DNA of 64,000 nucleotides, from assembly GCA_973895155.1 (NCBI GenBank), contig OZ316899.1, forward strand, positions 15,899,974-15,963,973, read 5' to 3'. How positions within the stretch are numbered: the stretch's first letter is position 1; each line of letters opens with the position of its first letter. Below are positions 27,496 through 48,000 of the stretch, piece by piece. A program made the translations under genes and the position numbers. The notes under the pieces were generated by a model that saw only the letters and a list, made by a program, of their open reading frames with translations, was not told where the DNA came from and did not search any database. The DNA is from Marsupella aquatica. Taxonomy: Eukaryota; Plantae; Marchantiophyta.

Positions 27496-27564
27496 ACTCG
27501 TATGGGGGGGAGGTAATCCATCAGTTATCAGTCACTGATATCAGTCACCCCCTTTTTTTTCTCT

Positions 27565-28120
27565 AATCTCGGAGACCTCTCCAAGATGGCGACAGTTTTT
27601 TTTGGCAATCTCGGAGAGCTCTCCGAGATCCCTACCATTTTTTTGGCCATCTCGGAGAGGTCTCCGAGATGGCAACAATTGTTTTTGGCAATCTCGGAGA
27701 GGCTCTCCGAGATCCCAACACACTTCCAGGAGTATGTTGGAGACATGGTAGTTTTTTTGCTCACCATGTCAGAGAGCCTCTCCGACATACCAAGTCACTC
27801 CATTGCCATCTCGGAGAGCCTCTCCGAGATACCAAGTCTTTTTGTTGACCATCTCGGAGAGCCTCTCCGAGATACCAAGTCACTTTGCAAACCATCTCGG
27901 AGAGCCTCTCCGAGATACCAAGTCTTTTTGTTGACCATCTCGGAGAGCCTCTCCGAGATACCAAGTCACTTTGCAAACCATCTCGGAGAGCCTCTCCGAG
28001 ATACCAAGTCACTTTGCAAACCATCTCGGAGAGCCTCTCCGAGATACCAAGTCACTTTGCAGACCATCATCGACTTTCCCATTCCATTTCTAAGACCATC
28101 TCAAAGAGCCTCTCCGACAT
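27565..28120. repeat. Left subterminal array of the palindrome TCTCGGAGAG(C/G)CTCTCCGAGA
   Basis: About 13 copies with ~42-bp spacing. Confidence 0.95.
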
Positions 28121-28243
28121 ACAAATACAAAAAATTTGCAAGTGATACACATCACATTCACTTTTCATATATATTATAATGTGTACACAGCAACACTTCA
28201 TCATTGCTACCTTCTCTAAAGCTAACCCCTGTTGGCCACTACT

Positions 28244-29430
28244 TTATTCTGTTATCTGATATGTGCACAGGTCATAAATAATCTTCTTTCGCAAGTTTCC
28301 TACCTGGCTGCCATCAAAATCCATAGGAGCATCTCGACTTATGCGCTCTGCATAGTTAAGGATAAATACCCCACAATTTACACTATCTTCTTGTGATGGA
28401 AGGCCTGACACTAAAGTTCTAGGCCAGTTGTTTGCATCTGGTGAGGGCATGCCTCTTTGACTTGCTTCATCCTCGACATACCTTGTTAGAGTATACATGA
28501 GATACTCATTTCGAGCCTCCCAAAAGTTTCCTGATTTCTCCCAAAGCGAATCTAGGAACAACACCTCTTTTCCAGTTAAATCAATCACTGCCAACACCCA
28601 ATGCTCCCTGTTTGCCTGGTGGATAGGGACCAATATCCTGTCATAATCAAATATGTTTTCTGTTTTGGTCCATCGAGCAACATTGGCAAAACAGTATACG
28701 GGCGTTGAGAGCAACGTGTAGAATGCTGTGATGAAAAATGCACACTTTGGATAGCCTCTTGATCTCCCCCTAAACTGCAACAAGGCCAAGTATGCATCGA
28801 TGATATCTGAATGTAGCCATTGAGCTCCTGTTCTTCCTTCAAACAAGCATCTCATTGACGCCCTGGTCAACTTGTAATCTACAAAGTTGAATAGTACTTC
28901 CTCGTCTGGGAGCTCTGTGGATAGACATGTGGATACTATGTCGGAAAAGTCTTGAGAGCAGACTACTTCAGCAAATAACCCAGGTATCTGGGTATTCCCA
29001 CCACGTGCTGCATAGGATTGAACAGCATGGCATTAGGCATCATCTTCATCTGAGCTATAGGTCACAAAAGAAGGGTGAGCTATCTTATCACTATCACTGC
29101 TGACACTCTCACTTTCATTGTAGTCTACCTCTACTGCTCTATCATCTACAAATCTTGATTTTCGCCTCTTTGTGTACTTCTCAGCTACACCCTTGAGCCG
29201 TTTGAAGGGGCGTGAATCAACAATCCCTTATGCGTAAGTTGGAAGGCAAAATCTTTCTGGAGAGAAAGTTTTCGATGCTTCCTCCCATGCTTCACGGACT
29301 TTGTCCTTGTCCGATGTGTGCCATTGTCCGGAGTCGATGTTCCTGTAGTGAACTGCCTATTGGTTAAGTAGACAGTTTAAGGTAATACCATAATAATGTG
29401 GAACTTCACATTTTTATTTATCCTCACCAT
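28244..29430 (-). pseudogene. Ulp1/SENP (peptidase C48) SUMO protease carried by the MULE
   Basis: WLHSDIIDAY, REHWVLAVID, FLDSL, QEDSVNCGVF (H-D-C triad and Q present). The same frame extends to ~29356 through two TAA stops. Possible ATG|gtgag micro-exon at 29430-29428. Confidence 0.88.
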
Positions 29431-29481
29431 GGCACAATGTAAATTGCAAACTAACAACAAATGGGTTCTTGGATTCAACGT

Positions 29482-32400
29482 TTACTCACAATCCTGAGCA
29501 TTCCCACCCTTGCCTTCTGCGGCATCCTCCTCTGAATCAGACTCAAGGACAAGCTTCTTCCGCCCTTCAGGCTTCTTAGTCTCCTTGGCCTCCTCCTTCT
29601 TACTCTCCTCGCCCTCCGCCTTGGTCTGATTGCCCTGCTGTGTTGAAAGGAGTTTTGACACCACCGAAGCTGCTGACTCACCAAAGTAGTCATGCGCTTC
29701 CATCCCAAATACTAGTCGCCCACAATTATTGGCAGCTTTGTAGATAGCACCAAAGTGGACATTCCAAGAAAATATGATATCGCCGGGACTGGTGATGTGC
29801 TCTATGATGCATTGCAAGGTTGCAGGCGATAAGGTTTCGGCCAATTCGTCTCTCACTGCATCATCTTCCTTTGTAAAATTGGATAGAGCATTGCTCTTTC
29901 CTGGGCACAAATCACCAGTAATTGGCTTCATATGTACCTTTGAGAGGGTCACCTCTATACCCTTCATGGCGAATATATCCAAATGCAGATATTGAGCCTG
30001 TCACATCATGCAAAATAGATTCGCACTTGTTAGCAACACTGGCAACACTAATTGCTAAACTAATCCGACATCGGTCCTACCTCTCTAAACCCTAAAAATC
30101 CTACCTATCTCAGAGAGGCTCTCCGAGATCCATGCTACCTATCTCAGAGAGGCTCTCCGAGATGGATCCTACCTATCTCAGAGAGGCTCTCCGAGATCCA
30201 TGCTACCTATCTCAGAGAGGCTCTCCAAGATGGATCCTACCTATCTCAGAGAGGCTCTCTGAGATCCATGCTACCTATCTCAGATAGGCTCTCCGAGATC
30301 CTACCTATCTCAGAGAGGCTCTCCTAGATCCATGCTACCTATCTCAGAGAGGCTCTCCGAGATGGATCCTACCTATCTCAGAGAGGCTCTCCGAGATCCA
30401 TGCTACCTATCTCAGAGAGGCTCTCCGAGATGGATGCTACCTAACTCAGAGAGGCTCTCCGAGATCCATGCTACCTAACTCAGAGAGGCTCTCCGAGATC
30501 CATGCTACCTAACTCAGAGAGGCTCTCCGAGATGGATCCTACCTATCTCAGAGAGGCTCTCCGAGATCCATGCTACCTAACTCAGAGAGGCTCTCCGAGA
30601 TGGATCCTACCTATCTCAGAGAGCCTCTCCGAGATGGATCCTACCTATCTCAGAGAGGCTCTCCGAGATCCATGCTACCTATCTCAGAGAGGCTCTCCGA
30701 GATCCTACCTATCTCAGAGAGGCTCTCCGAGATCCTACCTATCTTAGAGAGGCTCTCCTAGATCCATGCTACCTATCTCAGAGAGGCTCTCCGAGATGGA
30801 TCCTACCTATCTCAGAGAGGCTCTCCGAGATCCATGCTACCTATCTCAGAGAGGCTCTCCGAGATGGATCCTACCTATCTCAGAGAGCCTCTCCGAGATC
30901 AATGTTACCCATAAGGGAGAGGGTGTCCGACATCGTAATTGCGGACACATTTTTCAACTATCTCGGAGAGCCTCTCCGAGATGACTTCTATTGAAATGCC
31001 AAAATTGAAGTGAGCTTACAGCTTTTTTGCTTGACGCCATGTAGCAAGGTGTGTCATTCCAAATGGTGAATGAGTCAATGTGATCCAACTTCTCAGCCCA
31101 GTCAATGTGAAGGTACTCAAAGATTGAGCCTGTGTGGGCAAATGAACCACTGTGCACAATGCACAGGAAACCGTCATTTGTGAGTAGAGAGTCTGCCAAT
31201 GTCGTCGCCACTTCTAGGTCACTGAGCCGAAATCTATTCCACACCGGAACATTATTTTCAGCCTGCGCTATGCGATAATCTGTCCCTAGCTGAACAAAGA
31301 TCATATCACAACCATGGCCCTTAGGTACACCATCAACTATCCAACCTTGTTTTCGCAAGCCAGCCAACTTCAATTTCTTACACCAGTCCCGGAATTCCCT
31401 CATGAATGGAGGGAGAGGCAACTTTCCCGTGGTTGGCTGATATTTGTCCTTCAGCCAAGAAGAACACTCTAGTAAGGTCATATGCTCTTTTGCATGGCAA
31501 AATTGCAGGGCAGATGTAATAGCATGAGAGGGCCGAGGTACTCCAAGAATTTCGCAAAGATCATCCTCCGGAATTTCTGGGGCTTCTGTTGAAACTGGCT
31601 TCTTTGTGGGTTCGTCTATCCTCTTGTCGGCTTTCTTCTTTGGCCGACTGGTTGGCTTACCAGAGATTTGTGGTTTGCTTGGGGTCCCACTCGGGGTCCC
31701 GCTTGGGGTTGAAAGGTCAGGCTCCTCCTCCTCCTCATGGCCCTCTGCATTGTCCCCGGTGGCCATCCCATCCTCCTCTCCATTGTCCCCACTCGCCGCT
31801 TTCTCATCCTCCTCTCCATTGTCCCCACTCACCGCTTTCTCATCCTCCTCTCCATTGTCCCCGGTCTTTCTTGGCTCCATCTTCTCATCCATCGGACGAC
31901 GTTTGCTTGAGGTAGACCCTGGGGTTCCAAACTTTTCCTTACTTTTTTCTGCAGAACAAAGTAAGGAGTTTAGTTATCATTTTACAATGATACTATCTCG
32001 GAGAGGCTCTCAAACATATGTCAGATGTACAATGCAAGCTAGGGTGTAAACCTTACCAGGAGTGCCTTGTTCTGAGGTGGTGTCTTCTGATTCCTTTTCT
32101 TTCTTCCCCCGAACCTTCTTCCCATCATACTCTGGCTCTCCAAGAGGCAAAATGGCCTCCAAGTCCAATGCAGCCTTTGTCGACAGCTCAAGATCTCCCA
32201 ACTTTGAAGGTGCAAAAAGGTTGTCTGGTAGTTTCCCCTCCTTTGGGAGGTTGGCAGCTTCCTTCTCTTCGGGCGTAATGAACTCATTCCAATCATTGAA
32301 CTCCATGAACCATGGACAATTTTGTCTCTCCCAGTCTAAAAAGACTCTTGCTGCTGGCTTCAGCCCATCTGTTGGATACATTGACAGCGGGCCTTTCTCC

Positions 32401-34308
32401 GTCATCCATGCAGTCAGAGCACTTGGTAACACTTTGAAAGTAGAGGCTCCAATGCTCTCCTGATGAAGTAAATATCTGACCACACACCTCTTTGCACGCT
32501 TCCTCCACACATCTTTGCTTTGCTTTGCTGGATTCCACATCTTCTTGCCCTCCTCATAGGACCGAGTCTGTACAAATTGCTTGTACATCTTGTTGTGAAA
32601 CTCAACAAACTCGTCTTTGCTTCCATTGAAGTTCTGCCACTCACCAGAATCATATGCACTCTCGGCAAACTCTGACATTATCAAACTGCCAACATGGGCA
32701 ATGTAACACCACATTGACCACACTAGCAACCAAGCTCTCACTGCTGAATCACCATATACATCTGGATGGTGGTGTCGCTTCTTCTCCTCCGCGGTTGAGA
32801 AATGAACGCGGAGTAACTTGTTTCGACACTCAGCAGGCATCACCGCACTTGCAAACAATTTAACTCGATCCAACCCCACTTACACTTGTGGCCGATCTTT
32901 CTGTTTACTCTACAACTGGTGCAGCTCCTCGGCAATCTCCAGAAACTCCTCTCCATTTGCTGGATTGACAATCTGAGCAACTTCTGCATTTTGCCCTCCC
33001 AAGACCTACAAGCTTCACTCGTCATGAGTGTGGTTTCCTTTTGGAACTTATCCAAACTCCAGGCATGGCCAATTGCAGCATCGGCTGCCATCTCCTTCGC
33101 AAGACGAATCCTCCCGTCTTCAATATTATTCCACGACATGATGTACACAGCAGCATCCTTTGTCATGCACTTGCTATACCATGTCTTTCCATGCCCATGG
33201 CTTCTTGCTGCTAAGAATCTAGCATAACCATCCGGATGAAGCAATGTCTGATACTCCTCCAAAGGTGTCATCAACAGCTTCTTCACCCTGTCTGCATCGG
33301 TCAACCAAGATGTCTGCACAACGTTTGCGCTTATCCTGCATAAAGAAGCGACAAATGTTGGCGTCAAAGGCTTCATACCTGAAAATTACATCTCTCTTGG
33401 AGATGCTCTCTGAGAAGGCATGGACATCTCGGAGAGGCTCTCTGAGAAGGCATTGATATCTCGGAGAGGCTCTCCGAGAAGGGAAGGGCTCTCCGAGATA
33501 GCATTTTGAGAGCCAAACATTGTATGTGTGTATGTATCTATCTCGGAGAGGCTCTCCGAGATAGGATTGCCTATGTGGGTGCAAAAAAACAACACCTACA
33601 AGAACAACCAAAAACCAAGGGGGTGGAAACTTACGCGTTGAGGCCGTGCATTGCCTGCTCAATCTTCCTAAATCCTTGTTTTCCAGGCTGTAGAAGAGAG
33701 AATCTCACGCAAGGGTGGTACTTCTGCTCGTCAGGATACTCTTCAGCCACTTGTCTCCATGCATTCAGGCGATGATTTCCATCAAACACCCAAAACATCT
33801 TACCCTTCAAAACGTGAAACTCCTCGTACTCATCACACTCCATCTCAAATTTTGCGTTAGCTTGTTCCCATAGAGGGTCCCAATCCGCGGAAAATTCAGA
33901 CATGGAGTGGGTGGCGTTATGCGCATTGGTCTCTGATATGTGGAATTCCAAAAACTTGTCCACATACCCATTCTTCACGAAGTCCTTCTTCATCTTCAGA
34001 ATGGAGCTCTGTTGGAGAGTCCGAACTGCCTCCATTGTCATCAAACGACATAGTGGAATCCGAGGTGGCTCTCTGGGCTTCCCACTTGGTTCAGCTCCAA
34101 ATGAAAGCAAGTACTCCCCAACAATCCCTTCGAATGCACCTTTGTTCAGACGTTCAGCAGACACATTTTCAAAGTTCAGAACCTTCGGCTCCAGCTTCTT
34201 CACTGTGTGAGTTTCCCGACCACTGGCGGTGCTCTCTGCTGTCTTTGATCTGGTCTGCCGACCAGACGATGAAGGAGAGGGAGTGGGTTGCTTCCTCTTC
34301 CCTGTCAT
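29482..34308 (-). pseudogene. Spliced ParB/Srx-like domain + beta-class N4/N6 DNA methyltransferase-fold fusion protein
   Basis: Predicted exons 34308-33635, 33335-32057, 31948-31020 and 29997-29482 join in frame via GT-AG introns. ParB-like RIPLCRL...VR...NGY...FWVFDGNHRLNAW. MTase-like DMIFVQLGTDY, LLTNDGFLCI, TIWN, SPATLQCIIEHITSPGDIIF...AANNCGRLVFGME. One frameshift and two stops near 32880-32990. Confidence 0.7.
30100..30980. repeat. Intronic palindrome array (intron 3 of the ParB-MTase gene)
   Basis: About 24 units of 31-36 bp, CTACCTATCTCAGAGAGGCTCTCCGAGAT(CCATG/GGATC). Confidence 0.95.
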
Positions 34309-34334
34309 TTTCAAATCTCACCAACTATTGAATT

Positions 34335-34870
34335 GCACGAGCGCAACTTGCACAACACTTGCACCACCCACAGCTCAGTCGCAGCACTCGCACTCGCACC
34401 GCCACAGCTCACCGCACTCAATTGCACTGCTTCCAGCACTCGCACCGCCACAGCTCAGTCGCAGCAAGCTCAATCACTGGCAGTGGCACAACACTCAATC
34501 GCACCACTCGCACAACACTCGCACTCGACCGCCACAGCTCACCGCACTCAATCGCACCGCTTCCAGCACTCGCACTGCCACAGCTCAATCGCAGCAAGCT
34601 CAATCACTGGCAGTGGCACAACACTCAATCGCACCGCTCGCATAACACTCGCACTCGACCGCCACAGCTCACCGCACTCAATCGCACCGCTTCCAGCACT
34701 CGCACCACCACAACTCACTCGTAGCAAGCTCAATTGCACCACTTGCACAGCACTCAATCGCACCGCACAACTACTCACACTCACAATCGCACTCAATCGC
34801 ACCGCACTCACAATCGCACTACTTCCAGTACTCGCACCACCACAGCTCACAGCACACAGCTCATAGCACA
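34335..34870. repeat. 130-bp tandem repeat built of GCACTC/CGCAC submotifs upstream of the ParB-MTase gene
   Basis: GCCACAGCTCACCGCACTCA recurs at 34401, 34531 and 34661. Confidence 0.85.
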
Positions 34871-35372
34871 CAGAGCGCGGAGAGGGAAAGATCACAAAGC
34901 AACTTACGCTCTCCAAGAAATATGAGGTAAATTGCATCCGCACTCGCACTCGCTTGGCCTCAATTGCTCACCTTTCAAATGAGGAAAGGCGAGAGACGGC
35001 GGGGACTCACCAAAGTAGTCATCATCATTATTAGGCAACGGAAGATCTAGGGGGATCACAACTGACTTCACTATCGCCGTCACGCAGGTTGAGTCCCATC
35101 CAAGCAATGGGAGATCTATGGGACCACTCATTGATTACAAGTGGTAGGCGCCACGGGAGGAAGTTGACATGTTAGCAGTTTATTGGCTTATATGTTGTCG
35201 TACTCTGATAATGATGAATGCCTAGATTTGACTCATGTCAGAGTCGCAACACTGAAGTACCTATACAGATGCTTTCATTATTACTACCCCTTCACGCCAT
35301 AATGTCCTTGGTACGATTGATTCCAGACCAGATAAGATTTCCTATCATTCCTTGGTATTAATGAGTACGATC

Positions 35373-36220
35373 GTGGGGACGTAAGTCGGAGAGGCTCTCC
35401 GAGTTGACATGTAAAGTGGGGACGTAAGTCGGAGAGGCTCTCCGAGATGACATGTAAAGTGGGGACGTAAGTCGGAGAGGCTCTCCGAGTTGACATGTAA
35501 AGTGGGGACGTAAGTCGGAGAGGCTCTCCGAGTTGACATGTAAAGTGGGGACGCTAGTCGGAGAGGCTCTCCCAGTTGACATGTAAAGTGGGGACGTAAG
35601 TCGGAGAGGCTCTCCGAGATGACATGTCATGGAGGACCCATGTCAGAGCCTCTCCAAAATTGAATATTACACAAGATCAGACCTCGGAGAGGCTCTCCAA
35701 GATGACATATCAGGTTGGTGATAACTTTGGAGAGCCTCTTTGACAAATATTGGGCCTAATCCTTGCTACACACCTGAAGATGGCATCTCGGAGAGCCTCT
35801 CCAACATCCCTAAACCCTTCATACCTGCGCAAGATGGTATCTCGGAGAGCCTCTCCAACATGGGTCAAGGCTACATACCTCCGCAAGATGGCATCTTGGA
35901 GAGCCTCTCCAAGATGAAACTCGGTGAGATCCGGTGCAAGATCTAATCTCGGAGAGCCTCTCCAAGATGGGTCGAGGCCTCATACCTGCGCAAGATGGCA
36001 TGTCGGAGAGCCTCTCCAAGATGAAACTTGGTGAGATCTGGTGCAAGATCTAATCTCGGAGAGCCTCTCCAAGATGGGTCGAGGCCTCATACCTGCGCAA
36101 GATGGCATGTCAGAGAGCCTCTCCAAGATGAAACTTGGTGAGATCCGGTGCAAGATCTAATCTCGAAGAGCCTCTCTAACATGGGTCGAGGCTTCCAGAT
36201 GGCATCTGAGAGAGCCTAAT
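35373..36220. repeat. Intergenic palindrome arrays (six 43-bp units, then longer degenerate units)
   Basis: GTGGGGACGTAAGTCGGAGAGGCTCTCCGAGTTGACATGTAAA x6, then repeated TCGGAGAGCCTCTCCAAGATG units. Confidence 0.9.
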
Positions 36221-36409
36221 GGACATCCTAAACTTGCTGTCAAAGGTTCTTGGATGTTGGTCCAATAAACTTAGTCACTGTCAATAACAGTTTTCACGCT
36301 CACAAGGGTACGTTGTCAAGAAGGATTCTTACATATTCAACGAGGGAAGAATATTGTAACAATTTTTACGCTCAGTCTGGGCGATAAGGTACTCTGACAA
36401 AACAATCTT

Positions 36410-39400
36410 TGTTGTGGGATAAATGAGACAAAGAGTTGGTTCCATCTTTACTCTTGGTAGGATATGTACATGTGGCTACGGCCTAAGTAGTTAGGGTAGT
36501 TACATAGGTAGTTATCCCAAAGGTAGACTTAACTCAGGTATGAGTTACAACACTCCCCCTTTGTAACATTGGGGTTTAAATGTTACAATCAAGAGTCTAC
36601 TTTGGGCATACTCAGTGGTATACAATAGGTTTTTTTTATGTCTAGCCTATTTTATAAATGGTGTAGCCATCTCAAGTTTATTATAAATGAATGTAAAGCT
36701 TCTCCTAATAGATGTCTTATAATTCATGTTGCATGGTAAAGTATAAGTGGGGGATGTAACCTCATTAAAACCTCCCCTACTTTCTTTGTGGGAGGAAAGA
36801 GTATTACCATCCCCATGGGTGTAACATAATTGGGTTTAAGCATATAGTGTATGTGTAATTTCTACAAAGTCTCTTAAGGTGTTTGTCAACACTATAGGCA
36901 TGTTGAAGATCCTCCTTGGTTGGTGTTAGCAAAGTTGATGCTGTTTTGTGTCTTTCGTCTCTTCCCGGTCAGGCAATGAAGATTCCTCAATGGTCATAGA
37001 TTACATGCAAGGAAAAAACAAGGTATTAGTTCATAATGAAGATGATATGGTTGATTGAAATCCGTTGGCCTTGGAATCGTTTGGAGTGTCCAATCCTAGG
37101 TCTCATATATCATAGGGATTTCCTATCAAGGTATAGCGTACCATCTTTCATGGTGCCTTACCAAGTCATACCTCACCTGATAGTACCTTGTAATGTGATA
37201 CCATACTTCATATGATCATATGATACCTTATTATGGAATGATGTGGGGTCTTTGATATTTCCAATTTAAGTCGTCATGACATGTCATCCAATATTGGTGA
37301 TTTAATGCATTTTTCATAATTTGGCCATATGCTTCTAACTCATGGAATGTAGTTCCATTTTTTTTAAATATTGATTGTTGTGAAAAGCACTTGTGCGGTA
37401 GGCACATCCCATGGGTTAAATTTCTGGGAGGCAAGTCTTGCTTGAGGTCTCCCCCTCAATTTGTCAAATATTTTTCCTTTCTGGCTGGCTGTGCAGTAGG
37501 CACCCATTTGCTTCCATGTGCAGTAGGCACAGGGCTTTTATGTGTAGTAGGCACCCCTGGGAAAAATATCTCCCCCTGAATTTATGAAATTAATTGGTGG
37601 AAGTAATCATCATTTGTCGCCATGTAGGTTCTGTAGTTCAGCTTCTTTCTTTATGTCCTTACTTCATGCTTTGTTGTTTGGTTTTTCTTTCCTTTTGAAG
37701 AGAAAGTCTCTTTGTTCTTTAGTTCTCCATTCCTTAGTGTAAAATGGTCTTCTTAGAAGAAAAGGTGGAGGACTTTCCTTTGGTTTGATGGCTTCTCTTT
37801 GTTTGCCTCCTTTGCCCGGCGTCTCGTCTTTAGCTTGTACCACGATCTCCATCTGCACTGGACGTCCTTCTCTCTCCTGGCGTTCCTCACGTTCTCTCTT
37901 TGCTTTTTCGGGTTTGTGCTTCCTTCAATGTTCTTGGATTTATCCTCCTTGGTTTTGGTGCTTATTGTTTCTCTCCTCTGTCTCGCATTCTTTCCTTCAA
38001 AGTTTTCAGTTTCTCCCTTCGCGTTCGATCATGGACTATCTTTATATGTTCGCGATGCTGCCTGCCTTGCTCACGATCTGCGTTCGATTTTTGTAGTGTC
38101 TTCTCTCCTCCTATCTTTTCAATTGGGAATTAGGCGTATGGGTGTTCCTTATGAATCAATCTTCCGTATGAGGTCGCCTTCACGGACTGGAATTAGGAGG
38201 TCTGATGACTCGTTCCAAAACGCAGATCTCCATGAACTTACAAAATACAACAGTATTATATACTTCAAATGTGGAACTCGTGCAGACGCGTCAGTATAAC
38301 CATGTATCATCTCGGTAAACGCCCAGTGTGCCTCACTTGGCCCCCGAAACCAAAACATTTTGCGCCTGTTAATTTAAGTCTCTGATGTTGTCGCCACAAA
38401 CTATTTGATCTCAGACTCGATAGCTTGTGGAATGACACCGTAAGGTGTTTTTGGAAGGTCTTCAGGATCGAAGCACCTTGGCAGCATTTTATTTTATTTT
38501 GCTTCGGATCCGATCGAGCACTTCGAAATATGAATCATTGGCAGGATGACAGGAAGACGCTGAAAACTGTCCTGGAGGACATCGACAAGGTGCCGTCCCG
38601 TAGCGGCGACAGAGAACTCAATTTTGGAGTACCGAATGCTGAAGCCATTCAAGGTGCAGAGCCGACAAGATTTACCGCTGAATTGGGCCTCGAGTTTGAA
38701 GATCTCACGTACACTGTCGTCAAGCAGGAGAAGATCGATGGAAAATGGGAGTCCTATCCCATCGACCTTCTGCAAGGGATTTTGGGAAAGGCTATCAGAG
38801 GCCAATTGACAGGAATCATGGGACCGAGCGGTGCTGGCAAGTCCACCTTCCTGGATGCTCTGGCCGGCCGCATTGAGCAACGGAGTCTGGGCGAGACAGT
38901 GCGGCTGGATGGGCAGCAGGTGACCGGCAGCTATATCAAGCGCAATAGCGCGTACGTGATGCAGGAAGACCTTCTCTTCCCCTTTCTAACAGTTACTGAG
39001 ACCTTCATGTTCGCTGCTGAGATGCGCCTCCCCACGAAGCTTTTGCACTCCGAGAAAGCTGACCATGTCCAGGCTCTAATCACGCAGCTTGGTCTTGAGG
39101 TAAATTACATGTCAATCTTTCTCTAGCATACAGCTTTGAAATCACAACTAGTACGATTTGAGCCATTACTGCTCCTGTATCTATCGTTTGAACCATTCTC
39201 ATTCTGTGGGAGAAATGAGACAAAGAGTTGTAACAGCAGCATCGCGTTCCTCCATGGCGGAATCTCGATCAGCGTAAGCTACGTCACGTAGCAGAAGAGC
39301 AACGTCTCTCTCCTCATATGCAACTATTCTCTCCGTGATAGCCAAATTTTGCTCCAAGATAGCTGCATCCCATGCGGCTATCATTGGCTATCGAGCGAGG

Positions 39401-39886
39401 CCTGTCCCTATGAGGTCGCGATGTCCTAATCGAATTCTTCTTTCTGCTTTTTGATCGTCTTCTCTCTATTGTTGTCGTCTTGCTCTTCTTATCCTTTTCA
39501 CCCTGGGGGAATGTTGCTTCTCAGGATCGGTCCTCTTGTGTGATGATATCGATTTGCGTTTCTATTCTTGCTGTCCTTATCGATTCCTCTCGAATGCCTT
39601 ATGAATTTCTATGTCCAATTTTCTAAAAAGTGCTCTCTTGTTCGATCTCTCTTCTTCTTCTCTTCCCGAGCGTTTTCAGATTTTAATCGCCATAGCCTGT
39701 TCTCTTCTCTCCGCTCCGCTGGTGAGACAAAGTGCTGATAACGTGTTGTGGGATAAATGAGACAAAGAGTTGGTTCCATCTTTACTCTTGGTAGGATATG
39801 TACATGTGGCTACGGCCTAAGTAGTTAGGGTAGTTACATAGGTAGTTATCCCAAAGGTAGACTTAACTCAGGTATGAGTTACAACA
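36410..39886 (-). mobile_element. Non-autonomous Ty1/copia-type LTR retrotransposon (Bianca-like PBS), recent insertion
   Basis: Two 143-bp TG..CA LTRs (36410-36552, 39744-39886) that look identical. TSD ATCTT; minus-strand PBS CGTTATCAGCAC; PPT AGGGGGAG. No recognisable pol. Confidence 0.92.
38530..39099 (+). pseudogene. Captured ABCG half-transporter 5' exon (STR/STR2-like nucleotide-binding domain)
   Basis: GLEFEDLTYTVVKQEKIDGKW, Walker A GPSGAGKSTFLDALAGRI, Q-loop AYVMQEDLLFPFLTVTETFMFAAEMRLP. Ends at donor GAG|GTAAAT before the ABC signature motif. Confidence 0.88.
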
Positions 39887-40390
39887 ATCTTGACATATTC
39901 AACAAAGAAAGAAGCGAGTCTAACAATTTTTACGCTCTGTCTAGGCGGTAAGGTACTCTGACAAAACAATCTTGACATTCAACAAAGAAGAAGCTAGTGT
40001 AACAGGCTTTACGCTCGGTCTGGGCGATACGGTACTCTGACAAAACAATCTTCACATATTCAACAAAGAAAGAAGCGAGTGTAACAGTTTTTACGCTCTA
40101 TCTGGGTGGTAAGGTACTCTGACAAAACAATCATAACATATTCAGAAAGAAAGAAGCGACTCTAACAGTTTTTACGCTTTGTCTGGGCGATAAGGTACTC
40201 TAACAAAGTCATAAGAATCAATAACAGTTTTCAAATACTGTTTGCTGATTAAGTTACGCTCTTGAGAAACAAAGAGGAATTGAGCAAGCCAGAAAGGCAA
40301 TAACATCCCTTACATGAACGAGGCATCTCTCGGTACATGCCACTTGAACTCTCTTGGTGCTCAACATTAGTCTTTCTTCAAGTGGTTATC

Positions 40391-43300
40391 ATGGCTGGCC
40401 GTGTGAGGATCACGTTTCCAGACAATGGAGACGTTGTTGTGCTAGCGACTGATGGTGTTGTTCAGCATACACCAGACAACGAATTAGCTCGTCGGTTCGA
40501 TGTTGAGATTGGGGAGTGGGCACTCTTTGAGGCCGGCGATGTCTTACCATTGATTGAGGCAGACTCAGAGGAGAGTGGAGAGGAAAGGATATGGCATCTG
40601 AAAAGTGAAGTTTCATACGTCCTTCAGTAGAGGGTGTACTCTGTTCCTCTTACTGAAGTTGGTTTGCAATCTCAAACTCGAGAGATTTCAGAGTGGCCGG
40701 CAAAGGTAGAGCAAGCCGAATTTCTTGAAAGTGTTGTTGCTGCAATGCTGAAAGGGAAAGGCACTTCGCGATGTGTAAAGGCTGCCCATTCCATTCTCAG
40801 AGTGCATTATCCACAACGAGTCATGACTCTGCCGGAATGGTATGATGGGGATTGCATTTTTGAGCTCCCCCCATTCACAGGAATGTACACAAAGGGTGCC
40901 TTCTTCTTGGGTATGGAGCGGAGAAATGACTGCTACTTGTGGAGCAAGCTCATCGAGACAGGGGCCCAAATTGGACCCAACCTGAACAAGGGAGGCTTCA
41001 AGTATAAGATTGGGAATGTGAGATGCCTGGGCTCTTTGCAATGTCCACATTCAGATTGTCCGGCTTTTACAAGTAAGAATGAGCGCAATTGCACAGAATG
41101 GCAACGAGATAGGGGTGGGAGAAATGAGGTTCCATTTCCTGTTGGGCGACTAGTTCCAGCAGAGAGTGTGATTTGCGCCTTTTGTGATCGGCCTCCTAAG
41201 TGTATAGCCAAGTGTCTAGCCGAAATGTTCTACATAACTCCGACCTCTCATGACCATTACATTTACAAGCACATGACACGTGTTGCTATGCATGTTGGGA
41301 GTCACTCACATCCGGCCAAATTTGTTCTCAAGAAAGATCAAAAAGCTTTCTTACATAAGTTGATGGAGGAGAAATTGAAGAAGAATCCTCATGCAATGCC
41401 GTCTGTGATCAAGAGTGACACAATTAAAGCTCTAAGGGATATTTTTGATGACAAGGTTGCTGGGATTGTCACATTTGAGGAAGCACGGGATCTGAATGAA
41501 ACATTAGCGATCCTATCAGATCGATCAGTTGTAAGATCTATGATACAGAGCATACGCAAGTATACCCATGCCTCATCCGACCTCCAAGTCATCCTTGATC
41601 TTCAAAAAGAAACAGTGTTTTCATTTGTCCAGAGCACTCTATTTCCAAACCAGAAGCTAGATACAGATGAGCGCCCACACATTTTCAAGATGACTGTAAA
41701 GGGTCCAGGGTCTGGAATCGATCTCATTCGAAGGATGCAGCCTGGTGGAGATCTACAAGACTCATGGGTGATGTTTGATGTCATGCATCGGATGACTGAG
41801 AAGCAATGGTGCACAATGTCAGCTCATGTATACGACCACCTATACAGAGGTCTCTGCACAATTTTTGTATGCGAGCTAGTTTCGGAAGATACTGCTGCAC
41901 TACAAACTGCATGGAAGGTCATGAAGCAAGTGTGTAAGGCAAATGGGCTTGACAATGTTATGTTTTGTGGGTTCATTGCCGATAATGCTGCAGCTGGGTG
42001 GAATGCAGTTCGAAACACATTCTGGGATGGAAGAGTTAATTCTCAAAAGGAGCGATCTGATGCATTTCACTGGGCGCAATCAATGGAGAAGATGACAAAG
42101 AAATGCATTCTTCCAGGCAAAGCAGTTGAGCATAAGGAGCTTCTGGATTCATTGAGGGACGCTGCCAATGTGGTTCTTGCATTTCGGACTTTTGAGAAGA
42201 TGAAGGATTGGTGGAAAAATGGGAATGCAATCAAAGGAAAAACCAAGTCACTGGAGACATGGCTTTCGTGGTGGATTGTGCGGTTCTCCCAGTGGGGAAA
42301 CTTTATTCGGCTGGTAAGTCTATGAATTCTTAGTAATATTCTATCTCGGAGAGCCTCTCCGAGATGGAACATATGGGTAATCTCCGAGATGGAAGACGTG
42401 GGTCATCTTTGTCGAGGCTCTCCAAGATGGAAGAGGTGGGTCATCTCGGAGAGGCTCTCCCAGATGAAAAAGGTGGGTCATCTCGGAGAGCCTCTCCCAG
42501 ATGAAATAAATGGGCGACTTGGAAGACATGTTAGAGAGCCAACTTTTGTTTTGTAACACGGTTCATCTTAGAGAGGCTCTCCAAGATGAAACACTGGTCA
42601 TCTTGGAGAGCCTCTCCAGGATGGACCCCGTTGGACATGTTGCAGATGTACAAGATGACCCATGTACATTTTTTGGTAATACTCTTTTCTTTGATTTTTG
42701 TGTAGGACATGGACAGAACTAAGTCTGCATTGATGCTGAACCATAGCGGGGCAGAATCCGTGCATGCCACGATGCGCCGATGGTCTTCCACAACAAAGAT
42801 TGGGATAGTGCAATCTTGTATAACGGTTGCAACCCGTGCATCAAATCAAATTGGTGCCCTTGTGAACTACACGACCCACGGGAGGAAGGGCCGTGGCCCA
42901 AGCCTCTTTGAACTTCGTCTCCGAGATGCCAGGATGGTTGGGAATGTTAAGAGTTTCTTCCCAAAGTTAAATACGGTGATGACTCAACCGGAGATGGTTG
43001 AATATGCTTCGGGGGACCCAATTCCTGGTGACTATGAAACTCAACGAATGCCGGCGCAAGGCAAGGTTCCAGCTGATGCTATTGCAGTAGAAGACTCCCA
43101 TCGCGATGATGTCATTCTAGTAACGCGACCTAAAAAGCGGAAGTTCAAGGGGATTTCAAGCCAAGATGCAAACTTGAAAAGTACCATTCCTGACGTGGTC
43201 GACTTGTCAACCTCGTCAGACTCTCCTACAGGCTCTGGTGGATCAGATGTGGTGATTTTGGAGAGCCCAGTACAGCGTGCGACAAGACGTGTCCCTCCAC

Positions 43301-44337
43301 CATCAACCCCAAGGAGGTCAACTCGAGTGCCTCCTCCGCCCCCAACAAGGGCAATACGTGTTCCACCTCCTCCAACCCCAACAAGGTCAATACCAAGGTC
43401 ACCCCCTGTTTGTCCACCAACGCGGTTTGCTGAACCTTTGCATAATAGAGGCCAACAAAGACAAGTTCAGGAGAGCAATGTGATGCCAGGAATGTTGTTT
43501 TTGTCTCGCATCAGTCGCCATGGAAGTGGTCCCGCTTGTAGAGGTGCCTTCAAAGGCACAGAACGTCCAGCATGCGGTCTATACATCAAGGAGGTGGGGT
43601 TTCGTCATGCAACGTTGGGTGTGGTAGGATTGTGCTTATTGGCTGGGAGCAGTTACAAGGATCCAAACATTCCACAAAAGTTTTGGTTTTGCCCAAACAA
43701 CAAGTGTTGCCAGAAATCCTCCATGGCATATGTTACTGGGCGGCTGCCCCCACTACCGGAGAAGGTCCCAGTTGCTCGAGGAACCTATCTAACACAAGAT
43801 AAAGTTGATTTTCTCCATCTGAATGAATTGAATGTGGTACAGACCATCATTCCTGGTGATTCAATGGTGAGTCCTGGCGATGTAATTGTGGACTTGAATA
43901 GTTACCCTGAGCAGTTGGATCCATTGAAGCCTGATGTCAGGCTGAGCCGGCGCAATGGCCGCTTACGGCAAAGGAGATTGGTTGTGACGGCAGATGCAAA
44001 GAAACATATTGAGAGTGCCAAATCCGAGTTGATGAGGTTCACTTCCATGACTCGAATTGAAAAAGGGAATGCAATTGGCTTACGAGTGGTACTTTCCAAC
44101 ACTCATCATGACCGCAATTCAGCCCATTGTGTACAGATATGTGTGTTCCCAACTTGCTCTTGTCAAGATTTTATCATGAGAGATACTGGAAGATACTTCT
44201 TTCCTTGCAAACACTTGTATTGGTGCTATAAAAACATTTGTGGACGAGATCTAGAGAGCGACCAAGAGATCCACCAGCCAATCTTGACACTTAGCGAGGT
44301 TCGTAAATTGGTGTCAAATGTAGCAGGCTCAGGGTGA
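40391..44337 (+). pseudogene. MULE-type transposase: GCM/WRKY-like Zn domain, DDE core, Cys-rich domain, C-terminal SWIM; one premature stop
   Basis: Exons 40391-42313 and 42706-44337 (CTG|GTAAG ... TAG|GAC, in frame). TAG at 40628. Motifs CLGSLQC...HVGSHSHP; MFDVMH, IADNAA, DAFHW, AESVHA; SWIM CSCQDF...PCKHL. Confidence 0.85.
42340..42625. repeat. Palindrome copies within the transposase intron
   Basis: About 7 variably degenerate TCTCGGAGAG(C/G)CTCTCC copies. Confidence 0.85.
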
Positions 44338-44424
44338 ATGCATGTCAAAGATGTTTCGGGTTTAGTGGGTAGAACGATACACTTTTGTATCCTTTCATAA
44401 TAATAAATATTCAAGATTTCAAAT

Positions 44425-45070
44425 GATGTTGATCCCATCTCGGAGAGGCTCTCCGAGATTCCAACCCAGTGTTGATCCCATCTCGGAGAGGCTCTCCGAG
44501 ATTCCAAGTGACGTTGATCCCATCTCGGAGAGGCTCTTCGAGATTCCAAGTGACGTTGATCCCATCTCGGAGAGGCTCTCCGAGATTCCAAAACCAGTGT
44601 TGATCCCATCTCGGAGAGGCTCTCCGAGATTCCAAAACCAGTGTTGATCCCATCTCGGAGAGGCTCTCCGAGATTCCAAAACCAGTGTTGATCCCATCTC
44701 GGAGAGGCTCTCCGAGATTCCAAGTGACGTTGATCCCATCTCGGAGAGGCTCTCCGAGATTCCAAGTGACGTTGATCCCATCTCGGAGAGGCTCTCTGAG
44801 ATTCCAAGTGATGTTGATCCCATCTCGGAGACGCTCTCCGAGATTTAAACCCAGTGTTTTTGGCAATCTCGGAGAGGCTCTCCAAGATTCAAACCCAGTG
44901 TTGATCCCATCTCGGAGAGGCTCTCCGAGATTGCAACAATTGTTGGAGACTTTGGTGACCAATCTCGGAGAGGCCTCCGAGATTGACACAAAATAGGACA
45001 TCAATCTCGGAGATGCCTCCGAGATTGATTAAAAAAAAGGGGTCAATCTCAGAGAGGTCTCCGAGATTGT
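44425..45070. repeat. Right subterminal palindrome array
   Basis: About 15 units of 42-45 bp, GTTGATCCCATCTCGGAGAGGCTCTCCGAGATTCCAA. Confidence 0.95.
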
Positions 45071-48000
45071 CCAAAAAAATGTCGGTGACTGATATCAGTC
45101 ACTAATAACTGATGAGATTGCTCCTCTCACTCGTATTGATCCTTGGTAGCATTGAACTCCAGTTGTTTCAGTAATTGAAATGAATGTTTCCTTTCCCATG
45201 AGTAATTATCTAAATTTGATTGAGAAGTTATCAATTTGACAATCTAGAAATCCTTGTGTGAGAAGATACCAATTCAAGCATTCTAGTACCGTCACCACTT
45301 GTTGACCAGAAAGAATTCTTGGTTTGATAACTATATCTCCATATCAATTTCTAGTTAATGTTTGATGTCTATTCTAATTCGACCATGTTATGAGCTTTGT
45401 TGCATTCTGAATCTTAAAAATCCAGAATCCTGTTGATCTACTGGGGATCATAATTTTTCATCATCTCTTCTCATGAGTCAATTGATAAGACATTCTTACT
45501 AGTACTTTTCCATGTCTTTCTTTAATTATTAGTTTTTATGCATTGAGTACTGTCAATCCTCTGGAGAGAGAACTCCCTGGCGAGGTTATGCCGAATCAAC
45601 ATCTTATTTGTTCTTTTCAATACCAATTTTCTTTTCATTAACTCTTACAGGGAACGAATTCAGGTCTTTAGAAGTTAAAGTGTTTTTTAACCATCTGACC
45701 ACTCTACTACAATACTAGTAGCAAAGTTCTGTCTATCTTGATCAATGCTACCTTGTGGTGCGTTTCCCAACACCTCTAACCCCAAGAACCATCCGCAACC
45801 GGCTATGAACCACTACTTATGGTCGGCTTATGGTGGTTTGGCTACTATTCGGCTTGGAAACGCGGTCTACTCTTTGATCCACACTATGCTAGACCAATTC
45901 TTTCACTGGGCTTGTGAATTGTGTATTGCTGAGACGCCTAATTCCTCAATTGACTTTGTCGGGTATGTTTGTATTTTGCCCCCGGAATGTACCCCTACGG
46001 CTTAATCTCTTAAGCCGCCTGAAGGTTTTTCTCAAACCGACTCAACCCACACTTTAACCAACAAAACACTCTCAATCCTCACTTTTCTCTCAGAGTTTGG
46101 TTTGGCAGTCTCAATCAAGACAATGCAATTGTATTAGCTCATAGTATCACTCTAACTGACTCAAATCGATCAAGCAACAAATATCATAACACACAACACC
46201 ATGATTGGCAAGAATCTGCAAACTAAGCAAACAAGGCCAACTCAATTCAAACAATTGCACAGAAATCCATGGGAACTTGTGTTTTACTGATAATCCGCGG
46301 TCTAGATTTAGCCGAGAGCTTCCTATGTAGTAATACTGATACACTAGAGTCTTGACTAGAAAAAAGCCCCTCGAGCCACTCTGCCCAGGTTTTTATCCTT
46401 GCAGTGCATCCAGGGGAATCAGCGGAAATCAAAACCACAAATCACGGCCTTCCACCGTGATAAACCTGCTAATTAACTATCACCAAACACAACTTGACTA
46501 ACCTGGAATCTTGCGGGAACCGAACACCTAATACTACCTAAGCCGACAGGGCACTACTTGCCCTGTCCCATCCTACAATGGTCGCGCCCTTCTGGCCCAA
46601 GCCCTTCTCCTTCCGCCACATCCTCCTTCCAACCGACGACTGGCCCTCCTTAATTGTTAGATGACCGGGGGTAAGCCCGAATCTTCCGACTCTACACCTC
46701 CTCTTGCAATCGGCTCCGGCTTGATCCCTTTGGCTTCCCCGGCTTTGGGTCCTGGTTTAACGGCCTTGGCATCGGCAGCATCCTCCTGGGAAACGGCTTG
46801 GATAGCGTTGGCCTTCACTTCCTCCATCCAAGCCTGCTCTCCAATACGTTTTGTCTTGATCTTCCATGGCTTCACATTCCGGTAGTCCATGGTGGCGGTA
46901 CCTGTGTCTGAACCTGTTAGCGTAGCTCCAAGTTCATTGGCATTACTTATCTCAACTACGGCTGCCTTTGTAGCAATAGTCCCACAAATGTGAGCGGCCA
47001 TACTTTCTACCTCTTCTGGAGTGGCCTTGAGGGGTACCCCATAAGTACCTGCTGGCCCTATGAATGTCTTGGCCAGATCTGCAACCAACTGCATTGCCTT
47101 ACCCTCAATTACCCTTGACAATATTGATGTCAGTTTTGGCATGTCAGTATTCCCGGTTGTACAAATGGCGTCCTCATGCTTCTCCTGCATGGCCTCCAGC
47201 CGGTCGAGGAGCTTGTCATACTTCCTTTGGGCTTCAGCCAAGGCCTTCTCGCTCTGGGTGGCCTGGTCCTTAGCCGTCTTTCTGAGTCTCTCGACTTGCC
47301 AATTTAGATCCTGTACCTCCTCCTTTGAATCGGCTAACTCCAGCTGTACCTTTGTCAATTTTTCCTTGAGCTGCTGGTTGTCCAATTAGTAATTTTCCAA
47401 TTGGTTATTCGCCACCTCCAATTCCTGCTGCTTAGCCAAGAGATCCTTTTGAGCTTGTTGATCAACCTTTGTCTTAGCAACTTTGGCTTCCATGTAGCGA
47501 AGCCGAGCAAAGCCGAGCAAAGCCGAGCAAAGCCGAGCAAAGCCGAGCAAAGCCGAGCAATTACTTCTTCTTTTTTTAATTGCTCCAACGTCATAGCCTC
47601 CTCCAGCCTTGTTTGGTCAGCCATTTCCTTTCTAAGAAATGGTCCCGATTCTAACTCATTGCCAAAGATTTCTAAGGCTAGCAGTCCACACATGTCTCCA
47701 TACTCCCTAGCCCGGTCCCTCGCATAATTTGACCTGCCAGGTGATACTGGCATCTGCCAACGAGGCCGTTTCTCCCAAGCTTCTGCCCATAATTGATCAA
47801 AGTCAATGAGAGGCTTGGCCTGCTTCTCACTAACCCGTTTGATTTCCTCCGGCCAATCACCACCTGGTAGCTGTCGGTCTTGTATGTCATTTTGGACCTT
47901 CCACTTGGCGAGTTTCTCCTTTAGACCTGCCTCGGCCTCCTTCATCTGGTCAAATTCCAATGGTGTCACATCCGGTGGCGGAGACTTTGGAATTTTCTAA

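Follow-up and report, generated by a model that had tools for sequence, protein, structure and literature searches.

A decayed accessory gene with predicted ParB- and methylase-like folds in a palindrome-bearing transposon of the liverwort Marsupella aquatica

To our knowledge, few transposon-encoded proteins recognise the DNA of their own element, and the classic self-recognising proteins, VANC and the TnpA protein of En/Spm, are both from seed plants. It has been shown that VANC removes silencing, and that the motif arrays to which it binds lie in introns, between genes and in the terminal DNA of the VANDAL family to which it belongs (PMC5735166). In red algae, Plavaka, Mutator and Zisupton elements carry accessory genes with PF01555 and ParB-like domains beside tandem inverted-repeat arrays, and the authors of that work proposed that the PAG2 and PAG3 proteins bind the DNA of their own element (bioRxiv 10.1101/2025.02.11.637652). 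The stretch analysed here, 64 kb of contig OZ316899.1 from the liverwort Marsupella aquatica (hereafter the window), holds a DNA transposon with an accessory gene that is predicted to join a ParB/sulfiredoxin (Srx) fold to a beta-class DNA methylase fold, surrounded by arrays of a palindrome. On balance, and with a preference that is only modest, we favour the explanation that the gene is a decayed copy of a conserved transposon accessory gene, whose protein is a sequence-specific DNA-binding or anti-silencing factor that reads the palindromes of its own element and does not methylate them.

The transposon is bounded by clear termini and carries, besides the accessory gene, a divergently oriented transposase:

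27504-45128: whole DNA transposon, 17,625 bp, with an 8-bp target-site duplication (TSD) and terminal inverted repeats (TIRs) of ~110 nt
27535-27544, and elsewhere in the window only at 45089-45098: terminal motif CTGATATCAG, ~30 bp inside each transposon end
40634-44337, plus strand: transposase, in two open reading frames (ORFs; 40634-42325 and 42709-44337), divergent from the accessory gene, with a SWIM-like zinc finger at the C-terminus

A perfect TSD, ACTCGTAT, flanks the transposon at 27496-27503 and 45129-45136, and the TIR arms (27519-27629 and 45004-45114) are 79% complementary. Long TIRs together with a TSD in the 8-11 bp range are the anatomy of Mutator-like elements (MULEs), and by this anatomy the family, which is found in liverworts and ferns, is Mutator-like; an 8-bp TSD also suits hAT elements, and as such the TSD does not itself decide the superfamily. 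The Mutator-like label rests on anatomy and on a sub-threshold SWIM match of the C-terminal piece of the transposase (17.0 bits, E 0.0045, under the cutoff of 19.6), because neither Pfam nor the PDB yielded a match for the transposase, whether it was searched itself, through 18 homologues (P0191-P0217) or as a profile. Judged by its sequence, it is the product of a liverwort family for which there is no existing Pfam model, and its closest named homologue is a protein of the leafy liverwort Calypogeia fissa (65% identity). The decamer CTGATATCAG is expected 0.06 times in 64 kb, and both copies in the window lie near the transposon termini. It recurs close to the ends of the element in the liverwort Riccia sorocarpa (locus L004, at 2392, 14307 and 15800), despite the different palindromes of that element, and is a candidate transposase-binding site. 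At the Riccia locus the accessory gene divergently adjoins the same transposase (38% identical over 526 aa, E 1e-110), in an arrangement that the window shares except that another element has inserted in its spacer. This shared divergent pair indicates that the accessory gene is a long-standing transposon passenger. The gene and transposase pair is kept in liverworts as distant as Riccia and the ParB domain also in ferns, and the long ORFs of the accessory gene are intact in two further related loci (L001 and L003), where they are open at about 30-40% identity.

An earlier note on this DNA had read the accessory gene as four exons that splice in frame between 34308 and 29482. The strings that it quoted are all found on the minus strand (DGNHRLNA in exon 1, FVQLGTDY in exon 3 and SPATLQCIIEHITSPGDIIFSWNVHFGAIYKAANNCGRLVFGME in exon 4), its four pieces do total 2910 nt in frame, and GT/AG boundaries suit exon 1 (34308-33635), exon 3 (31948-31020) and the start of exon 4 (29997). 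Its exon 2 and its end of the gene were wrong, and we revise the gene model as follows:

33635-34308, minus strand: exon 1, a disordered basic N-terminus and then the ParB/sulfiredoxin-fold domain predicted at residues ~60-224
33336-33634, minus strand: intron 1 (GTAAGT...CAG), with three palindrome copies (33429-33559)
32057-33335, minus strand: true exon 2, the middle region, broken in the window copy
31020-31948, minus strand: exon 3, an acidic and basic linker and then the N-terminal half of the predicted methylase fold
29998-31019, minus strand: intron 3, nearly filled by a 34-bp tandem palindrome array (30030-31008)
29490-29997, minus strand: exon 4, the C-terminal half of the predicted methylase fold, with the motif X-I-II region PGDIIFSWNVHFGAI...NCGRLVFGME
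29033-29352, minus strand: proposed exon 5, a conserved C-terminal tail (LPTYA...FVDD...SSDEDD)

A 178-codon ORF at 32840-33376, which had been placed in intron 1, is coding: 9-12 homologues align with it right after the ParB domain, and in metagenomic relatives it is continuous with the former exon 2 in single ORFs of 451 aa (L001) and 599 aa (L003). When the acceptor at 33336/33335 is used, the sequence across the exon 1-2 junction lines up in order with the Riccia proteins. A mini-intron of 36 nt between the 178-codon ORF and the former exon 2 was rejected, as it breaks the frame, and a frameshift lesion was preferred. At the other end of the gene, the stop codon that had been taken as its end (29484-29482) falls within a GTGAGT donor (29489), and exon 5, from the acceptor at 29353/29352 to its closing stop at 29035-29033, lines up in order with the C-terminal ends of several Riccia proteins (E 5e-4 and 9e-3 when four proteins were compared). 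The fifth exon is therefore supported by homology, and an intron at 29353-29489 is likely. No paralogue of the accessory gene was found elsewhere in the 64-kb window.

The first domain could be assigned at the level of fold. With exon 1 as the query, a full HMMER scan over 1.84 billion representatives returned 209 relatives of the ParB domain, and all of those that are named come from Riccia sorocarpa or from Adiantum ferns. An AlphaFold2 model built from 101 homologues has a predicted local distance difference test (pLDDT) score of ~97 over residues 60-224, and its top Foldseek matches in the PDB are sulfiredoxin, ParB, Noc, SbnI, PadC and a serine kinase (probability <=0.99, E ~1e-2). VIA-align, which is independent of Foldseek, found 13 of 48,161 PDB chains at Z>=2, and the top ten all belong to the ParB/Srx superfamily (KorB 7.0, PadC 6.2, SerK 5.9, sulfiredoxin 5.9 and the N-terminal domain of pNOB8 ParB 5.4); Atu1540 and SbnI are also among its matches. 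A Foldseek search of a viral fold library is in agreement, returning phage ParB proteins and one Mycobacterium phage "DNA methylase". The signature DGNHRLNA, from which a ParB/Srx domain had been predicted, is consistent with this fold: DGNHR occupies residues 176-180, in a strand-to-helix turn (strand 172-176, helix 178-190) at the position of GERR in ParB and GCHR in sulfiredoxin, the G-x-x-R signature is present, and N178 and H179 are almost invariant in the 101 homologues. Pfam ParBc (PF02195), in contrast, matched neither the window nor any of the 101 homologues at E<=0.1, and the motif reads DGNHRLNA in place of the CTP-binding box GERRxRA. As such, the model supports a ParB/Srx fold for the exon 1 domain, which cannot be shown to belong to Pfam ParBc or to be a classical ParB clamp dependent on cytidine triphosphate (CTP). 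The domain looks closer to the DGQHR/DndB branch than to Pfam ParBc. Assignment to that branch was reserved for matches to TIGR03187 or PF14072 above the curated cutoff. The DGQHR model TIGR03187 is the one matched by most members (6 of the 101, best E 0.001), with the window at E 0.022 and 14.5 bits, far under the cutoff of 58.9, and the DndB model matches three of the homologues at E 0.028. A lead from the ESM Atlas to DUF6551/DndB (score 0.82) is under the trusted level, and the Atlas's own model is poor.

The noncoding DNA of the transposon is dense with one palindrome. The 17-nt core TCGGAGAG-N-CTCTCCGA occurs in 66 copies in the window when up to two mismatches are allowed (<=2), against 0.03 expected; all 66 lie inside 27694-44928 and none lies in an exon. 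Within the accessory gene they occupy introns 1-3; outside it they are found in the spacer upstream, in the interval that separates the two transposase ORFs and in the subterminal DNA of either end, in these clusters:

27555-28117: subterminal palindrome array, TCTCGGAGAG-S-CTCTCCGAGA
35330-36200: intergenic palindrome arrays, upstream of the accessory gene
42346-42499: three palindromes between the transposase ORFs
44394-45014: subterminal palindrome array of the other end

The related loci have palindromes of their own. In L001 an 18-bp palindrome of another sequence (ACTAACGAYGTCGTTAGT) is present in 19 copies, spread over all introns of the accessory gene and its two flanks, L002 carries a third (GCTAGCGCCGGCGCTAGC) in eight or nine copies, and the Riccia locus has TCCGGCGAG-NNN-CTCGCCGGA in its spacer and a variant palindrome at its flanks, which make a fourth and a fifth. 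CpG dinucleotides are present in the palindromes of all lineages examined (the window, L001, L002 and L004). In the 34-bp array of intron 3, at 30110-30896, one arm of nearly every unit reads CA in place of CG (TCAGAGAG-S-CTCTCCGA), whereas the subterminal arrays keep both CpGs; the changed units may be an amplified deaminated variant, or may be half-sites with another role.

A transposase and a terminal motif that are conserved, set against palindromes that change from lineage to lineage, suggest a second and faster-evolving specificity factor, for which the accessory protein would be the obvious candidate. The alternative that survives best is that the palindromes are binding sites of the transposase, and that the ParB-methylase-like protein contributes nuclease or NTPase help, chromatin tethering or delivery of an Ulp1 protease. 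Subterminal repeat arrays bound by element-encoded proteins of transposase type are common, the AtMu1 transposase alone activates its cognate copies in a sequence-specific manner (bioRxiv 10.64898/2026.08.24.746577), and the palindromes of the window are also present at both termini and in the gap of the transposase gene. The fold matches to Atu1540, SerK and SbnI are a reminder that ParB/Srx domains can be nucleases or kinases. We nonetheless think this alternative rather unlikely, as the palindromes of the window and of Riccia are entirely different where the transposase and CTGATATCAG are conserved, and as those of L001 follow the accessory gene, lying in its introns and flanks.

The second fold was reached through homologues. 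Searched one by one against the libraries, the window exons alone gave no significant Pfam, NCBIfam or PDB sequence match, and a protein-homologue search with exon 3 returned none within the length range searched. The Riccia homologues, in contrast, match positions 165-218 of Pfam N6_N4_Mtase at E ~1e-5, just under the cutoff (23.7-26.2 bits for P0151, P0153 and P0154, against 26.7), and PF01555 stands in the precomputed annotation of four Riccia paralogues. The family profile matches CcrM among PDB sequences (E 3.8e-4) in two colinear stretches. A structural model of the Riccia paralogue P0157 gave the following Z scores against known methylases:

CcrM: Z 18.1 over 210 residues, Foldseek E 4e-11
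M.BceJIV: Z 18.1
M1.HpyAVI: Z 18.0
M.RsrI: Z 17.4
M.PvuII: Z 16.7
M.MboIIA: Z 16.6
rotifer N4CMT: Z 15.3
permuted MT-A70 enzymes: Z 11-12

Window exon 3 aligns to columns 108-240 of the Riccia profile (hhalign E 2.4e-11) and exon 4 to columns 251-394 (hhalign E 5.6e-9), and, as these are adjacent halves of one profile, the alignments also speak for the junction of exons 3 and 4. The beta-class fold and the motif order IV...X-I-II, in which the earlier note had recognised motif IV first and the region binding S-adenosylmethionine (SAM) last, are thus confirmed through the model of a homologue, and the motif matches on which that recognition was built are not due to chance, because the profile and fold evidence upholds them.

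The catalytic motifs themselves have been lost. For comparison, motif IV of these enzymes is (D/N/S)PP(Y/F/W), DPPY in CcrM, and the SAM-binding motif I is D-P-F-x-G-x-G; the family reads as follows:

Riccia: motif IV D(L/M)(P/S)(S/T); motif I DFAGGWG
L001: motif IV FPHN; motif I DMNVGLG
L002: motif I DWRVGEG
L003: motif IV HMGT; the contig ends before motif I
Window, minus strand: motif IV QLGT (31292-31281; QLGTDY to 31275); motif I SWNVHFG (29769-29749)

Over both motifs, contigs from other copies of high depth show no difference from the window (X1, 31096-31502; X2, 29746-29909), and the degenerate motifs are therefore a trait of the family in the M. aquatica genome rather than the decay of a single copy, in agreement with the earlier reading of a pseudo-enzyme. 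L003, which is ~40% identical to the window, has also lost motif IV. With both motif IV and the SAM loop gone, canonical N6-adenine or N4-cytosine methylase activity is, on sequence grounds, excluded for the lineage of the window. It may still be asked whether the protein is an active DNA methylase with an unorthodox loop in some lineages, marking the palindromes with N6-methyladenine (6mA) or N4-methylcytosine (4mC) to identify or protect the element. D-x3-G-x-G is kept at motif I in Riccia, L001 and L002, and D-x-P at motif IV in Riccia; some Riccia paralogues pass Pfam PF01555; the palindromes all have short symmetric cores of the kind expected of methylase sites; and eukaryotic 4mC enzymes exist in Marchantia and rotifers. 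We consider such an activity improbable. The aromatic residue of (D/N/S)PP(Y/F/W) is missing from every lineage in which motif IV could be read (Riccia, L001, L003 and the window), so that no relative retaining DPPY or SPPY was found among them, the lineage of the window keeps the domain despite its loss of the motif IV D and P residues and of the SAM loop, and a search with the Riccia domain returned Riccia paralogues only, with no DN4MT1-like enzyme.

The window copy is a pseudogene with four disabling lesions. Three are in exon 2, where one base is missing at 32978 and in-frame stops stand at 32912-32910 and 32882-32880; nearly all other copies, in contigs from four sequencing runs, differ at exactly these three sites, and with their letters exon 2 is open for 426 codons. 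The fourth, in exon 5, is a TAA at 29230-29228, where other copies have GAA and Riccia has Glu. The four runs behave as DNA of a multi-copy family, with every intron covered and no joints at the predicted splice sites. Compared with the family majority, the window copy has 11 synonymous, 13 non-synonymous and 3 nonsense differences, which are too few and too mixed for selection to be inferred. Over 28380-34340, C>T and G>A dominate the differences between the window copy and the other copies in runs X1-X4 (26 and 22 of 89 in X1), as would be expected where methylated cytosines are deaminated in a repeat family under silencing. As the window copy is dead, the interest lies in the family. A further alternative is that a ParB-methylase gene of bacteria or phages was captured, or acquired by horizontal transfer, and now decays without function within a transposon. 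Such a relic would agree with these lesions, with the lost catalytic motifs, with the commonness of ParB-methylase fusions in phages and with the Mycobacterium phage protein among the fold matches, but is very improbable indeed, given the retention of the gene beside its transposase as far as Riccia and of the ParB domain in ferns, the long ORFs of divergent relatives, the lesion-free copies in the same genome and the degenerate motifs held in common with L003.

An intact protein of the family would have ~1,100-1,200 aa, comprising the ParB/Srx-fold domain, a middle region of ~430 aa, a charged linker, the beta-class methylase fold and a short tail. Probably as a dimer, it would recognise the lineage-specific, CpG-containing palindromes of its own element, with the methylase fold perhaps reused for DNA binding, as the earlier note had suggested, and with a possible nucleotide-dependent switch in the ParB domain; once bound, it would regulate the element, by protection from silencing or by activation. 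Several points weigh against this explanation. That the accessory protein rather than the transposase binds the palindromes is an indirect conclusion, drawn from their distribution. Pfam and profile searches detected no helix-turn-helix or known domain downstream of the ParB domain, and a profile search of the PDB returned nothing for the middle region encoded by exon 2. The model of the methylase fold is that of P0157 (pLDDT 69, 80-90 in the core) and not of the window's own spliced sequence, and the splice junctions of the gene were placed by homology and GT/AG signals. The glycine-rich motif I kept in Riccia, L001 and L002 means that some lineages may bind SAM and have an unorthodox activity, and the death of the window copy means that nothing acts in cis from this locus. 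A more specific form of the palindrome-reading explanation is a tentative possibility, and one that we would not expect to hold in full: a land-plant counterpart of ParB-parS, in which a ParB/Srx nucleotide switch and a dead methylase serving as reading head would load on the palindromes and shield or activate the element, with co-evolving specificity. Such a system may share ancestry with PAG2 and PAG3, and ultimately with phage ParB-methylase genes.

The accessory gene has one further close neighbour within the transposon:

28244-28870, minus strand: Ulp1/SUMO-protease (C48) ORF, Pfam E 3.8e-26, in frame with exon 5 past the stop at 29035-29033

This ORF could be a gene in its own right or an additional exon that is used optionally, so that in the lineage of the window an Ulp1 protease may follow the short tail of the protein. 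It was not found in the related loci L001-L004, and its absence from all four indicates that it is lineage-specific or optional. Immediately 5' of the start codon of the accessory gene, at 34385-34850, are 3-4 tandem 130-bp units rich in CACTCGCACCGCCACAGCTCA, which are unrelated to the palindrome. The element inserted between the accessory gene and the transposase contains a fragment of an ABC-transporter ATP-binding protein (38425-39126, Walker A GPSGAGKST). In L001, ORFs with DUF659, which is typical of hAT transposases, follow the accessory gene (6035-6946, minus strand); these ORFs may belong to a neighbouring element, or transposons of more than one superfamily may carry the accessory gene. 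The fern protein P0080 (Adiantum capillus-veneris, 1176 aa) has the ParB-like domain at residues 211-315 together with a C-terminal FCP1/NIF phosphatase (E 2.4e-12), and is either a fusion with a different partner or an annotation chimera.

These analyses define, with evidence at the level of fold, a previously unannotated protein family in which two DNA-handling folds of prokaryotic type are combined, and which is accompanied by palindrome arrays specific to each lineage. Neither the ParB-like domain nor the middle region has a Pfam model, nor does the partner transposase; our literature search found no description of the family, and a 2015 survey of eukaryotic adenine methylases has no such land-plant clade (PMC4738411). 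The family is also relevant to the question of how DNA-modification modules of prokaryotes came to be part of mobile elements in eukaryotes. If the protein does bind the palindromes, it would be an independent and much older solution to self-recognition or anti-silencing, a natural case of a methylase fold turned DNA reader, and a source of orthogonal pairs of protein and DNA site.

The family can be compared with several described systems. Bacterial and phage ParB-N6_N4 fusions and beta-class enzymes (CcrM, M.RsrI, M.PvuII and M1.HpyAVI) resemble it in the order of ParB/Srx domain first and methylase second, in the same predicted fold and in the order of motif IV before motif I. Unlike those fusions, it has ~500 extra residues between the domains, introns and no DPPY, and the similarity of the window to beta-class methylases is under Pfam thresholds. 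METTL14 and the methylase domain of DIRS1 are alike in having kept the fold after catalytic or cofactor loss, presumably for nucleic-acid binding (PMC4738411), but belong to MT-A70 and PCIF1-like clades, with other partners and in another type of element. The red-algal accessory genes encode two proteins, PAG2 (PF01555 and SET) and PAG3 (ParB-like and 2-oxoglutarate (2OG)-oxygenase), in contrast to the single fusion without SET or oxygenase described here; PAG2 has a PF01555 methylase domain, whereas the methylase motifs of our family are lost, and the likeness is drawn from the published description. VANC and its VANDAL elements share with the window element an accessory protein beside the transposase and dense, family-specific arrays of noncoding motifs that differ between related families (PMC5735166). 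The proteins themselves have no homology, VANC having DUF1985/DUF287, of which the window protein has no Pfam match, and the VANDAL motifs are 9-bp direct motifs, in contrast to the 17-21-bp palindromes of this family, which are known here from their sequence. By these comparisons, PAG2 and PAG3 appear to be the closest match in composition, and VANC the closest in anatomy.

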